A stretch of DNA of 64,000 nucleotides from Octopus sinensis (taxonomy: Eukaryota). The notes under the pieces are model-generated. The model was not told the origin of the DNA. It saw only the letters and a program-made list of their open reading frames with translations, and did no database searches. Where the stretch lies: the NCBI RefSeq assembly GCF_006345805.1, contig NC_043009.1, positions 23,808,001 through 23,872,000 of the forward strand, given 5' to 3'. Both the position numbers and the translations under genes were made by a program. This document shows, piece by piece, positions 4,325 to 6,453 of this stretch. The first letter of the stretch is position 1; each line of letters begins with the position of its first letter.

Positions 4325-4359
4325 TTAGCTACCACGTGTCGCTATTTCGGCCAGAGAAG
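4325..4359 (-). CDS. Putative last coding exon of the minus-strand secreted peptide precursor: (A)SLAEIATRGS*
   Basis: Acceptor ttattttgttcag| (AG at 4360-4361). A phase-1 join with exon 6286-6453 gives ...GKKDYN-ASLAEIATRGS-TAA (stop 4325-4327). Confidence 0.55.
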
Positions 4360-4471
4360 CTGAACAAAATAACGATTCTTAGACAATTTCCTCGAATCCT
4401 TGTCCCTTCTAAATCTTACCATCTAACCTTTATTTTGCCGACCCAGCCAATGCTAAAGCACTACGCAGTCA

Positions 4472-4538
4472 CAGGCGGTGCCTGTGTGTGGTAAGGAGCT
4501 TGCTTCTCAACCACTGAAACAAGTAAAAGAATAAAAGA
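4472..4538 (+). mobile_element. Internally deleted SINE family A (head fused directly to tail)
   Basis: aggcgg..gtgtggtaaggagcttgcttctcaacca is joined to ctgaaacaagtaaaagaataaaag. Confidence 0.7.
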
Positions 4539-4559
4539 ATATATATGTATTCTCGCTCT

Positions 4560-5120
4560 CTCTCTCTCTTCTCCTCCTCCTTTGTTCCTTGTTCCCCTTT
4601 TTTCTCTCTTCTCCCCCTCCTTAATTCCTCTGTCCCTGTTTTCCTCTCTCTTCTCCTGACTGACCGATTGCCTGACTGACTGACTGACCGATTGCCGGCC
4701 TTTCGTGCTTAGCAGTCGTCGCGGCAAGACACATTTTTTCTCTCTCTGCCCTAAGGCATTTTTCTAACATGCCAGCTGAAAGTTTACTCGTCCTGTCAAA
4801 AGACGCCTGTCTGTGACGTCCTGTTTTTGTTATTATTATTATCATTATTGTTTTTATGTATTTGAATTCTTATTCGTGTAACATCGTCCGTTTTTCCGTC
4901 CTTGTTTTGTATATATTCGAGGCATTCTTCCAAGGAATCTAATGCGCTTGGCTTAGATTTCCTTTGGGGCTGGCCAGATCGGAGCAATCTCAAGATTAAT
5001 CAGCCGAAATTGCGAGGATGATCCGTTCTTGACTGAAAGATGAAGGCTTCGAATGTCCCGCCCCGCCGTTTTTTTGTATCGTCTTCTAAATTTTTGCGTT
5101 CTTGTCCCAGTTGTATTTTT
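4560..5120 (+). repeat. Probable PLE pseudo-LTR / 3' region repeat
   Basis: A pyrimidine tract precedes a conserved block ending tgtatcgtc...ttttgcgttcttgtccc. That end recurs reversed at 8830-8920 and resembles the repeat at 25070-26030. Confidence 0.4.
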
Positions 5121-5624
5121 TTACACACACACACACCACACACACACAGGCACACACACACACACACACACACACACCAACCACACACACACGCACACAC
5201 ACACACACACACACACACACACCACACACAACACACACAACACATATATATATATATATTATATATATACGTGAGGGTACCCAAAAGAGATCGGAAATTT
5301 GCAATATTATTTTATTCACTTAGCTTTATAGGTTTATACTTTTACCACCTTCAAAGTATTCTCCATTTAAAGCAATGCATTGGTCCAAACACTTTTTCCA
5401 CAGTTCGAAGAAGTCCTGGAACTCTTGCGAAGTGATGCCTTTTAACGTCTACATCGTTTATAAGTCGTAACAATGAAGTTAAACCAAAACAAATAAGTGA
5501 TATTTTGAAATCGTTTAGTACGTACGTTCAAGACTTGTGTACTCTATAATTGGAAATGCAAGCATTTACGTAACTTCCTCCAGTTAACAGGCTGAAATAT
5601 ATATATATATATATATATAATATA

Positions 5625-5927
5625 TCACGTGACCGACCAGACTTTCAGATGTTGCTACACATCGCTGGTCACAATGCGCTTTGCATTGTTTTAGCCTTCA
5701 AATGACGCTACTGCGCTGGCTAAGCGAGCAGGCCAACAGAAGAAAGTGTGAGAGAAAGTTGCGGCGAAAGAGTACAGCAGGGATGACCCCCACCTCCTGC
5801 CGGAGCCTCGTGAAGCATTAGGTGTTTTCGCTCAATAAACACTCACAACGCCTGGTCTGGGAATCGAAACCGCGATCCCACGACCGCGAGTTCGCTGCCC
5901 TAACCACTGGGCCATTACGCCTCCACG
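5625..5927 (-). mobile_element. tRNA-derived SINE family E (family D head, different tail)
   Basis: The minus strand begins ggaggcgtaatggcccagtggttagggcagcg; the tail contains gcgcattgtgaccagcgatgtgtagcaacatc. A partial copy lies at 14727-14848. Confidence 0.85.
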
Positions 5928-6228
5928 AATATATATATATATATATATATTATATATATAATATCTATATATATATATATATATATACTATATATATATA
6001 TTATAAATATATATATTATATATTATATATATATATATTATATATATATATATATATATATATATATATATATATATATATATATATATATATATATATA
6101 TATACATATGTGTGTGTGTGTATATATATATATATATATACACACACATATGTATATATATATACTATATATACACACACACATATGTATATATATATAT
6201 ATAATATTATATATATATATATATATAT
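5928..6228. repeat. Compound (TA)n/(TG)n/(CA)n microsatellite, representative of dozens in the window
   Basis: Read directly from the sequence. Confidence 0.97.
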
Positions 6229-6285
6229 AAATTAGATAGTAGATAGGCAAGATGGATAGATGATCGGTAAATTTAAGATTCTTAC

Positions 6286-6453
6286 CATTATAATCCTTTT
6301 TGCCTGAAGTCACTGGAAATAAACAGGTATTAATGAATCCTTCAGTTTTGCAAGGTAGTCTTTTCTGAGTGAAATCAATATCTGCACTCTTATCCATGCG
6401 TCTAATCTTCTTTGAGAACTTCTCTTTTATGAAGATAGAAGCAAATGCTTGTT
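6286..6453 (-). CDS. Internal 168-nt exon of a secreted peptide precursor: (E)[55 protein letters not shown]
   Basis: Acceptor gtatttttttttattag| (AG at 6454-6455), donor |gtaaga (GT at 6284-6285). The length is divisible by 3, the phase 1-1 frame is open, the sequence is unique, and a two-Cys segment is flanked by KR and GKK. Confidence 0.75.

Follow-up and report, generated by a model that had tools for sequence, protein, structure and literature searches.

A cassette exon encoding a dibasic-flanked cysteine pair in an uncharacterised, Octopus-restricted gene

The gene LOC115218537 and its surroundings

The window analysed here is a stretch of 64,000 nucleotides of the Octopus sinensis genome (contig NC_043009.1, positions 23,808,001 to 23,872,000), and its DNA corresponds to O. 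sinensis CM016871.1 (GCA_006345805.1) with 100% identity over 21.7 kb. On the minus strand, from position 11694 to 687, lies the gene LOC115218537, which consists of four coding exons with canonical splice sites (Table 1). When these exons are joined (582 nt), they translate exactly into XP_029644272.1; the product of LOC115218537 (XP_029644272.1 / XP_036364119.1) has a length of 193 amino acids. Every junction is in phase 1, which makes each of the exons 2 and 3 a cassette that preserves the frame. Exon 2 had been singled out in a preliminary description of this DNA, made from the letters alone, as the source of an amidated, disulfide-looped peptide of 18 residues. The exon is genuine in both its sequence and its coordinates, as it is exon 2 of XP_029644272.1, and the frame in which it had been read is the annotated frame, as follows from the exact match of the four-exon translation. 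Both the exon and the gene are already present in the public annotation, where they are listed as an uncharacterised protein.

Table 1. Positions of the features discussed, numbered from the first letter of the window.
Feature	Position	Strand	Remarks
Coding exon 1	11544..11694	-	Located by tblastn of two proteins of this gene against the window, 49-50/50 identical
SINE-like dispersed repeats	6533..6900	.	Just upstream of the exon 2 acceptor
Coding exon 2 (cassette)	6286..6453	-	168 nt, phase 1-1, 56 residues
KR..GKK block in exon 2	6296..6364	-	KR 6359..6364, 18-mer 6305..6358, GKK 6296..6304
AT microsatellite with TG/CA patches	5929..6229	.	About 55 nt downstream of the exon 2 donor
Homologue of the alternative first exon of O. 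bimaculoides isoform X2	5526..5565	-	Unannotated, intact; MLAFPIIEYTSLE, donor C/GTACGT, phase 1
Proposed terminal mini-exon	4325..4359	-	ASLAEIATRGS and stop, acceptor ttattttgttcAG/, phase-compatible
Coding exon 3	3711..3791	-	81 nt, phase 1-1, VSLIFFVYVEFLSIHIRLNTIECNFIV; annotated partner of the exon 2 donor
Coding exon 4	687..868	-	ENNQQKHF...LGCFEKWWPKLT and stop; TAG stop 687..689

Exon 1 starts with an ATG at 11694..11692 and ends at CAAG/gtatta in phase 1. Its first 22 codons (11629..11694) resemble a signal peptide, MNFKMVCVYFLVPLFSGILVSC, which on inspection is composed of MNFK, a hydrophobic core of 16 residues and SC. This N-terminus is conserved in Octopus bimaculoides and is in frame with exon 2. 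Since exon 2 lies downstream of this in-frame, signal-peptide-like exon 1, the product is probably secreted. Exon 2 itself is bordered by very strong splice signals, with the acceptor ttgtattttttttattAG/, a YAG with a polypyrimidine tract, and the donor AATG/GTAAGA. One frame of its strand is open, the remaining two contain stops, and under strict splice and open-frame criteria exon 2 is among only four exon-like segments in the window. Exon 3 is hydrophobic and is itself a cassette in Octopus vulgaris. Exon 4 carries the blocks SRYHSKFCL and LGCFEKWWP, both of which are invariant in the Octopus alignment. Just before its stop, a deletion of 7 bp that is found only in O. sinensis shifts the frame and removes the last 10 residues.

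In the preliminary description, exon 2 was continued into a mini-exon encoding ASLAEIATRGS, giving a short single-peptide prohormone whose end lies 11 residues past GKK. On paper, the mini-exon can be spliced after a phase-1 junction. It is absent from every annotated isoform of O. sinensis and O. vulgaris, however, and the annotated protein runs on for 87 residues encoded by exons 3 and 4, so that neither the mini-exon nor the short precursor could be upheld. The mini-exon sequence is identical in O. vulgaris, which is uninformative as the two species are too close, and a counterpart gave no match in the readable part of the O. bimaculoides intron.

The window is AT-rich and contains many microsatellites and transposon remnants. 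The AT microsatellite downstream of exon 2 lengthens the mechanical open reading frame of this exon to 172 amino acids. No RNA families were detected by Rfam in positions 1..12500, and no tRNA genes were found. An origin of exon 2 from a repeat or transposable element was ruled out, as no second copy is present in the window or in the compared loci. At the protein level, exon 2, exon 3 and the 5' end of intron 1 give a hint of internal duplication (p<=0.001 for exon 3 against the intron read-through), and at the DNA level the alignment of the same segments was not significant.

Isoforms, relatives and evolutionary rate in Octopus

Homologues were searched for with phmmer, exhaustively, against 1.84 billion representatives, and in 5.8 billion clusters with sequences as well as profiles as queries. 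In these collections, homologues are confined to O. sinensis, O. vulgaris and O. bimaculoides, and no homologue from another species was found, even with a profile as the query. The sole true phmmer match to exon 2 is CAI9731738.1 ('Hypothetical predicted protein [Octopus vulgaris]'). With this protein as the query, the O. sinensis product, the other two O. vulgaris isoforms and the O. bimaculoides isoforms were obtained. A word-index protein search with exon 2 and the ASLAEIATRGS tail gave no match, and nothing significant was found in Pfam and PDB for exon 2, for the full proteins or for their profile. The RefSeq, O. vulgaris and O. bimaculoides entries represent the same gene as the one in the window; all of them are named 'uncharacterized' or 'hypothetical', and not one carries a peptide-precursor annotation. 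In the literature, no paper was found on the peptide core or on the gene and protein identifiers. The statement in the preliminary description that the 18-mer could not be matched to any molluscan family agrees with the searches, which returned zero Pfam or PDB hits, zero papers and zero homologues outside Octopus. An AlphaFold2 model made from an alignment of six sequences has a pLDDT of 30.7 and is unusable. With its restriction to a narrow clade of three Octopus species and with no known domain, the gene has the features of an orphan secreted-protein gene.

Multiple isoforms of the gene have been annotated. In O. vulgaris, these combine exons 1-2-3-4, 1-2-4 and 1-3-4: exon 2 is included in CAI9731739.1 (203 aa) and in CAI9731738.1 (176 aa), where it is spliced straight to exon 4, and is skipped in CAI9731740.1 (147 aa). 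Both RefSeq protein accessions of O. sinensis carry exon 2. In O. bimaculoides, the orthologous gene LOC106876292 (XP_014780273.1 / XP_014780274.1) has the isoforms X1 (148 aa) and X2 (110 aa), both without exon 2, and the orthologous DNA is an assembly gap; according to alignments of the flanks, the orthologue of window positions 10853..5625 falls within a run of 2783 N (10542..13324 of that locus). For the O. vulgaris annotation, PASA is described as having supplied the alternative forms from transcripts of RNA-seq and Iso-Seq (PMC10700109). Therefore, judging from this description of the pipeline, both the inclusion and the skipping of exon 2 are probably backed by transcripts in O. vulgaris. 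With canonical splice sites, a symmetric phase and isoforms with and without it, exon 2 has the properties of an alternatively spliced cassette exon. This category, together with that of a taxonomically restricted secreted-protein gene, is the best fit to the locus.

Between O. sinensis and O. vulgaris, exon 2 shows 0/168 differences, but this identity is uninformative because the flanks are nearly identical as well (3/1161 differences, 0.26%) and only about 0.4 changes would be expected in the exon. The comparison with O. bimaculoides, which covers exons 1, 3 and 4, gives a dN/dS of 1.11 for O. sinensis and 1.26 for O. vulgaris, with a dS of about 0.14. The aligned introns have diverged by 9.8% from those of O. 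bimaculoides and contain about one indel per 100 nt. Over the shared coding sequence of 444 nt, there are zero stop codons and a single in-frame indel of 3 nt. The coding substitutions between O. sinensis and O. vulgaris are all non-synonymous (5/5). The gene thus evolves about as fast as its own introns, and its reading frame and a few blocks are kept. The simplest reading of these sequences is a young, Octopus-restricted and rapidly diversifying secreted protein, with a non-functional open reading frame as the less likely alternative.

The KR..GKK block and known peptide systems

The residues encoded by exon 2 are rich in Lys and Arg, include a Cys-X8-Cys pair and end in the tail ...GKKDYN. 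In the protein that contains exon 2, the candidate 18-mer is flanked by KR81 and G-KK103, and its two Cys are located at positions 3 and 12, with 8 residues between them. For an amidated 18-mer with one disulfide, the calculated monoisotopic mass is 1965.969 Da. The locus shares features with neuropeptide precursors, namely an N-terminal, in-frame signal peptide, as judged by inspection, and dibasic flanks with a Gly before the C-terminal site.

The chance level of such a block was estimated by defining the motif as dibasic-X4-40-Gly-dibasic without an internal dibasic site and by counting it across stop-free translations of all six frames of the window. There are 32 occurrences, 3/32 with exactly two Cys, and one of these two-Cys motifs falls inside a SINE-like repeat (6877..6948). 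First-order Markov simulations gave 4 motifs, of which 0.3 with two Cys; the excess in the window over these simulations is due to low-complexity DNA. With 32 chance occurrences, the motif by itself is therefore weak evidence for a peptide. In composition shuffles of the exon-2 protein, 4.7% of the trials gave any motif and 0.66% gave one that enclosed both Cys. Its presence in a real secreted protein is thus not a trivial coincidence, though it was picked post hoc by eye.

Several known peptide systems resemble the candidate in part. Elevenin has Cys at positions 5 and 14 with 8 residues between them (PMC4200219). A secreted precursor and the Cys-X8-Cys spacing are common to elevenin and the candidate, whose Cys occupy positions 3 and 12. 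In sequence, however, the candidate does not resemble the quoted oyster elevenins (KPRRRFCENFPFARRCIGVSA), no elevenin turned up among the homologues in HMMER searches of whole databases, and the candidate does not belong to the elevenins on this evidence. Elevenin is not known to be amidated and is located directly after the signal peptide. The candidate 18-mer, unlike elevenin, lies about 60 residues into the protein and within an optional exon. Cephalotocin/octopressin, CCAP, allatostatin-C and GGNG/EP share with the candidate a signal peptide, a disulfide loop and a C-terminal Gly followed by basic residues. On the other hand, the ring of cephalotocin/octopressin and the other Cys-loop peptides is X4-X6 in size, whereas that of the candidate is X8, and there is no sequence similarity. 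The Cys-loop amidated families are known for GKR or GRR, not GKK. The vasopressin/oxytocin type, a Cys1-X4-Cys6 nonapeptide followed by GKR and neurophysin, differs from the candidate, and no neurophysin or other Pfam match was found. The likeness to rapidly evolving venom, salivary, immune or reproductive effectors of the conotoxin type is of another kind: these share with LOC115218537 the orphan status, a signal peptide that is conserved above the rest of the protein, and a dN/dS at or above 1 with the open reading frame and Cys-containing blocks kept. LOC115218537 differs from them as it has no Cys framework or family match.

Optional exon, peptide precursor or drifting sequence

The reading that is preferred here, with a probability of roughly 65%, is that exon 2 is an optional coding exon of a young secreted Octopus protein, in which KR...GKK is internal sequence and not a processing signal. 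Inclusion of the cassette inserts 56 residues after the N-terminal region and ahead of the conserved C-terminal part, which is encoded by exons 3 and 4, and KR...GKK is most likely an ordinary internal sequence of this protein. Counted against this reading are the shuffle rates of 4.7% and 0.66% together with the in-frame signal peptide that precedes the block. Also counted against it is the unusable structure model, which gives no sign of a compact fold in which the dibasic sites would be buried.

The isoforms with exon 2 could instead be prohormone- or toxin-like precursors that yield an isoform-specific, Octopus-restricted, amidated and disulfide-looped 18-mer, which is considered quite unlikely. 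For this, the signal peptide would be removed, convertases would cut at KR81 and KK103, and a carboxypeptidase and PAM would use Gly101, with a candidate bridge between Cys3 and Cys12 of the amidated 18-mer. Such processing is consistent with the signal-peptide-like exon 1 in frame with the block, with the annotation of exon 2 in two species, with a motif enclosing both Cys that arises in only 0.66% of the shuffles of the mature protein, and with a Cys-X8-Cys spacing equal to that of elevenin (PMC4200219). On the other hand, the supposed pro-region contains the hydrophobic exon 3 and four additional Cys, unlike a typical spacer, and the fully conserved blocks are in exon 4, with none demonstrable in exon 2. 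In addition, exon 2 is optional and is missing from the annotated O. bimaculoides forms, the motif was chosen by eye amid 32 chance occurrences, and there are zero peptidomic, literature or homology matches. Venom-peptide genes are known for fast evolution behind a conserved signal peptide, which counts in favor of a precursor, and KK is a less favored convertase site than KR or RR, which counts against it. That the cassette would switch the gene between a plain secreted protein and the precursor of a hitherto undescribed amidated, disulfide-looped 18-mer is correspondingly doubtful. Exon 2 may also be a recently exonised piece of intron, representing splicing noise or an effectively neutral cassette without a function of its own. 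This is unlikely too: although O. vulgaris uses the exon as a cassette, the O. bimaculoides models lack it, it has no homologue elsewhere and it is flanked by a SINE-like repeat and a microsatellite within a 5-kb intron rich in transposable elements, where its symmetric phase would let inclusion be tolerated, it is present in 2/2 RefSeq accessions of O. sinensis and 2/3 isoforms of O. vulgaris, has very strong splice signals and adds an even number of Cys, and the assembly gap may be the reason that it is missing in O. bimaculoides. It is very unlikely that the whole locus is non-functional, as a transcribed, fast-drifting locus or a decaying gene whose open reading frame was translated by annotation pipelines. 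The dN/dS of about 1.1-1.3, the purely non-synonymous substitutions between O. sinensis and O. vulgaris (5/5), the 7-bp frameshifting deletion and the orphan status with zero domains and no usable fold prediction would fit such a locus. Against it, the open reading frame, the phases, the signal peptide and two blocks of 9 residues have been kept across about 10-14% divergence, with no stop and one in-frame indel, against about 4-5 predicted by the intron rate.

In octopus DNA that is rich in AT and microsatellites, dibasic...Gly-dibasic motifs often arise by chance, and they need backing from a signal peptide, exon structure and conservation. If the precursor reading were true, a single splice isoform would yield a bioactive peptide that is specific to cephalopods and belongs to none of the known molluscan families; this would be relevant to the evolution of cephalopod neuropeptides and venoms, as a lineage-specific signalling or venom-type peptide. 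For the optional coding exon that is favored here, little changes, as it is an already annotated exon of an uncharacterised gene. Taken as a whole, the gene is a modest example of a young secreted protein that evolves fast, in which a dN/dS at or above 1 goes together with a maintained open reading frame and two cassette exons.

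Structure of LOC115218537 and its orthologue

In LOC106876292, the O. bimaculoides orthologue of the minus-strand O. sinensis gene LOC115218537, both isoforms lack exon 2, the cassette exon that holds the candidate Cys-looped 18-mer. The region orthologous to exon 2 is exactly the one spanned by a run of N in the O. bimaculoides assembly, and therefore its absence from the gene models may be an assembly artefact. The first exon of isoform X2 has an intact homologue in O. sinensis, which fits exon 3 in phase and is missing from the annotation. Just before the end of exon 4, 7 bp (AAGTTTG in O. 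vulgaris and AAGTTTT in O. bimaculoides) are absent from O. sinensis; this loss shifts the frame straight into a TAG stop, so that the last 10 residues, KFVVKEDVKQ, which are kept in the other two species, are lost.

Read-through of the exon 1 donor into intron 1 gives a peptide that is similar to FFSIHVRLNTC of exon 3 (p<=0.001 in protein shuffles) and has FINTC in common with the loop of exon 2; alignments at the DNA level were not significant (p 0.13-0.19). This resemblance to exon 3 may be the relic of an old duplication or may have arisen by chance.

Features in and around LOC115218537, in the rest of the window and in the O. bimaculoides locus L002
Feature	Position	Strand	Remarks
7-bp deletion in O. 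sinensis, end of exon 4	687..692	-	comparison with O. vulgaris and O. bimaculoides
Homologue of X2 alternative first exon	5526..5565	-	ATG, MLAFPIIEYTSLE, donor C|GTACGT, phase 1
Motif RR-TKYLAVFNPSLCAGFKFC-RG-RR, two Cys	6877..6948	-	inside SINE-like repeat
Exon 1 donor read-through, start of intron 1	~11450..11543	-	...SFSSMHIFINTC
Transposon remnants, six segments	14..427; 21251..23133; 36401..37562; 49462..49734; 50253..50531; 52642..52971	+; +; -; +; -; -	
Long Pro/Ser-rich ORFs, GIY-YIG-like motif	28796..30297	+	YIGQTGRRLADRFAEH; GC-rich (55%)
227-aa Asp/Glu-rich ORF	62608..63291	-	from GAT/GAA-type microsatellite
2783-N run, intron 1 of LOC106876292	L002 10542..13324 (CM046613.1)		

Repeats and other reading frames

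The transposon remnants include a Tc1/mariner DDE_3 domain, a Mos1-type mariner (HTH_48) and a LINE that is GC-rich (about 55%) and carries endonuclease and reverse transcriptase. Other fragments are mariner-like or RT sequence. The Pro/Ser-rich stretch has no Pfam match and, judged by eye from its sequence, looks like a Penelope-like element. The Asp/Glu-rich ORF is probably not a gene. The two-Cys motif in the SINE-like repeat is a chance product and provides an internal negative control for the spotting of prohormone motifs.
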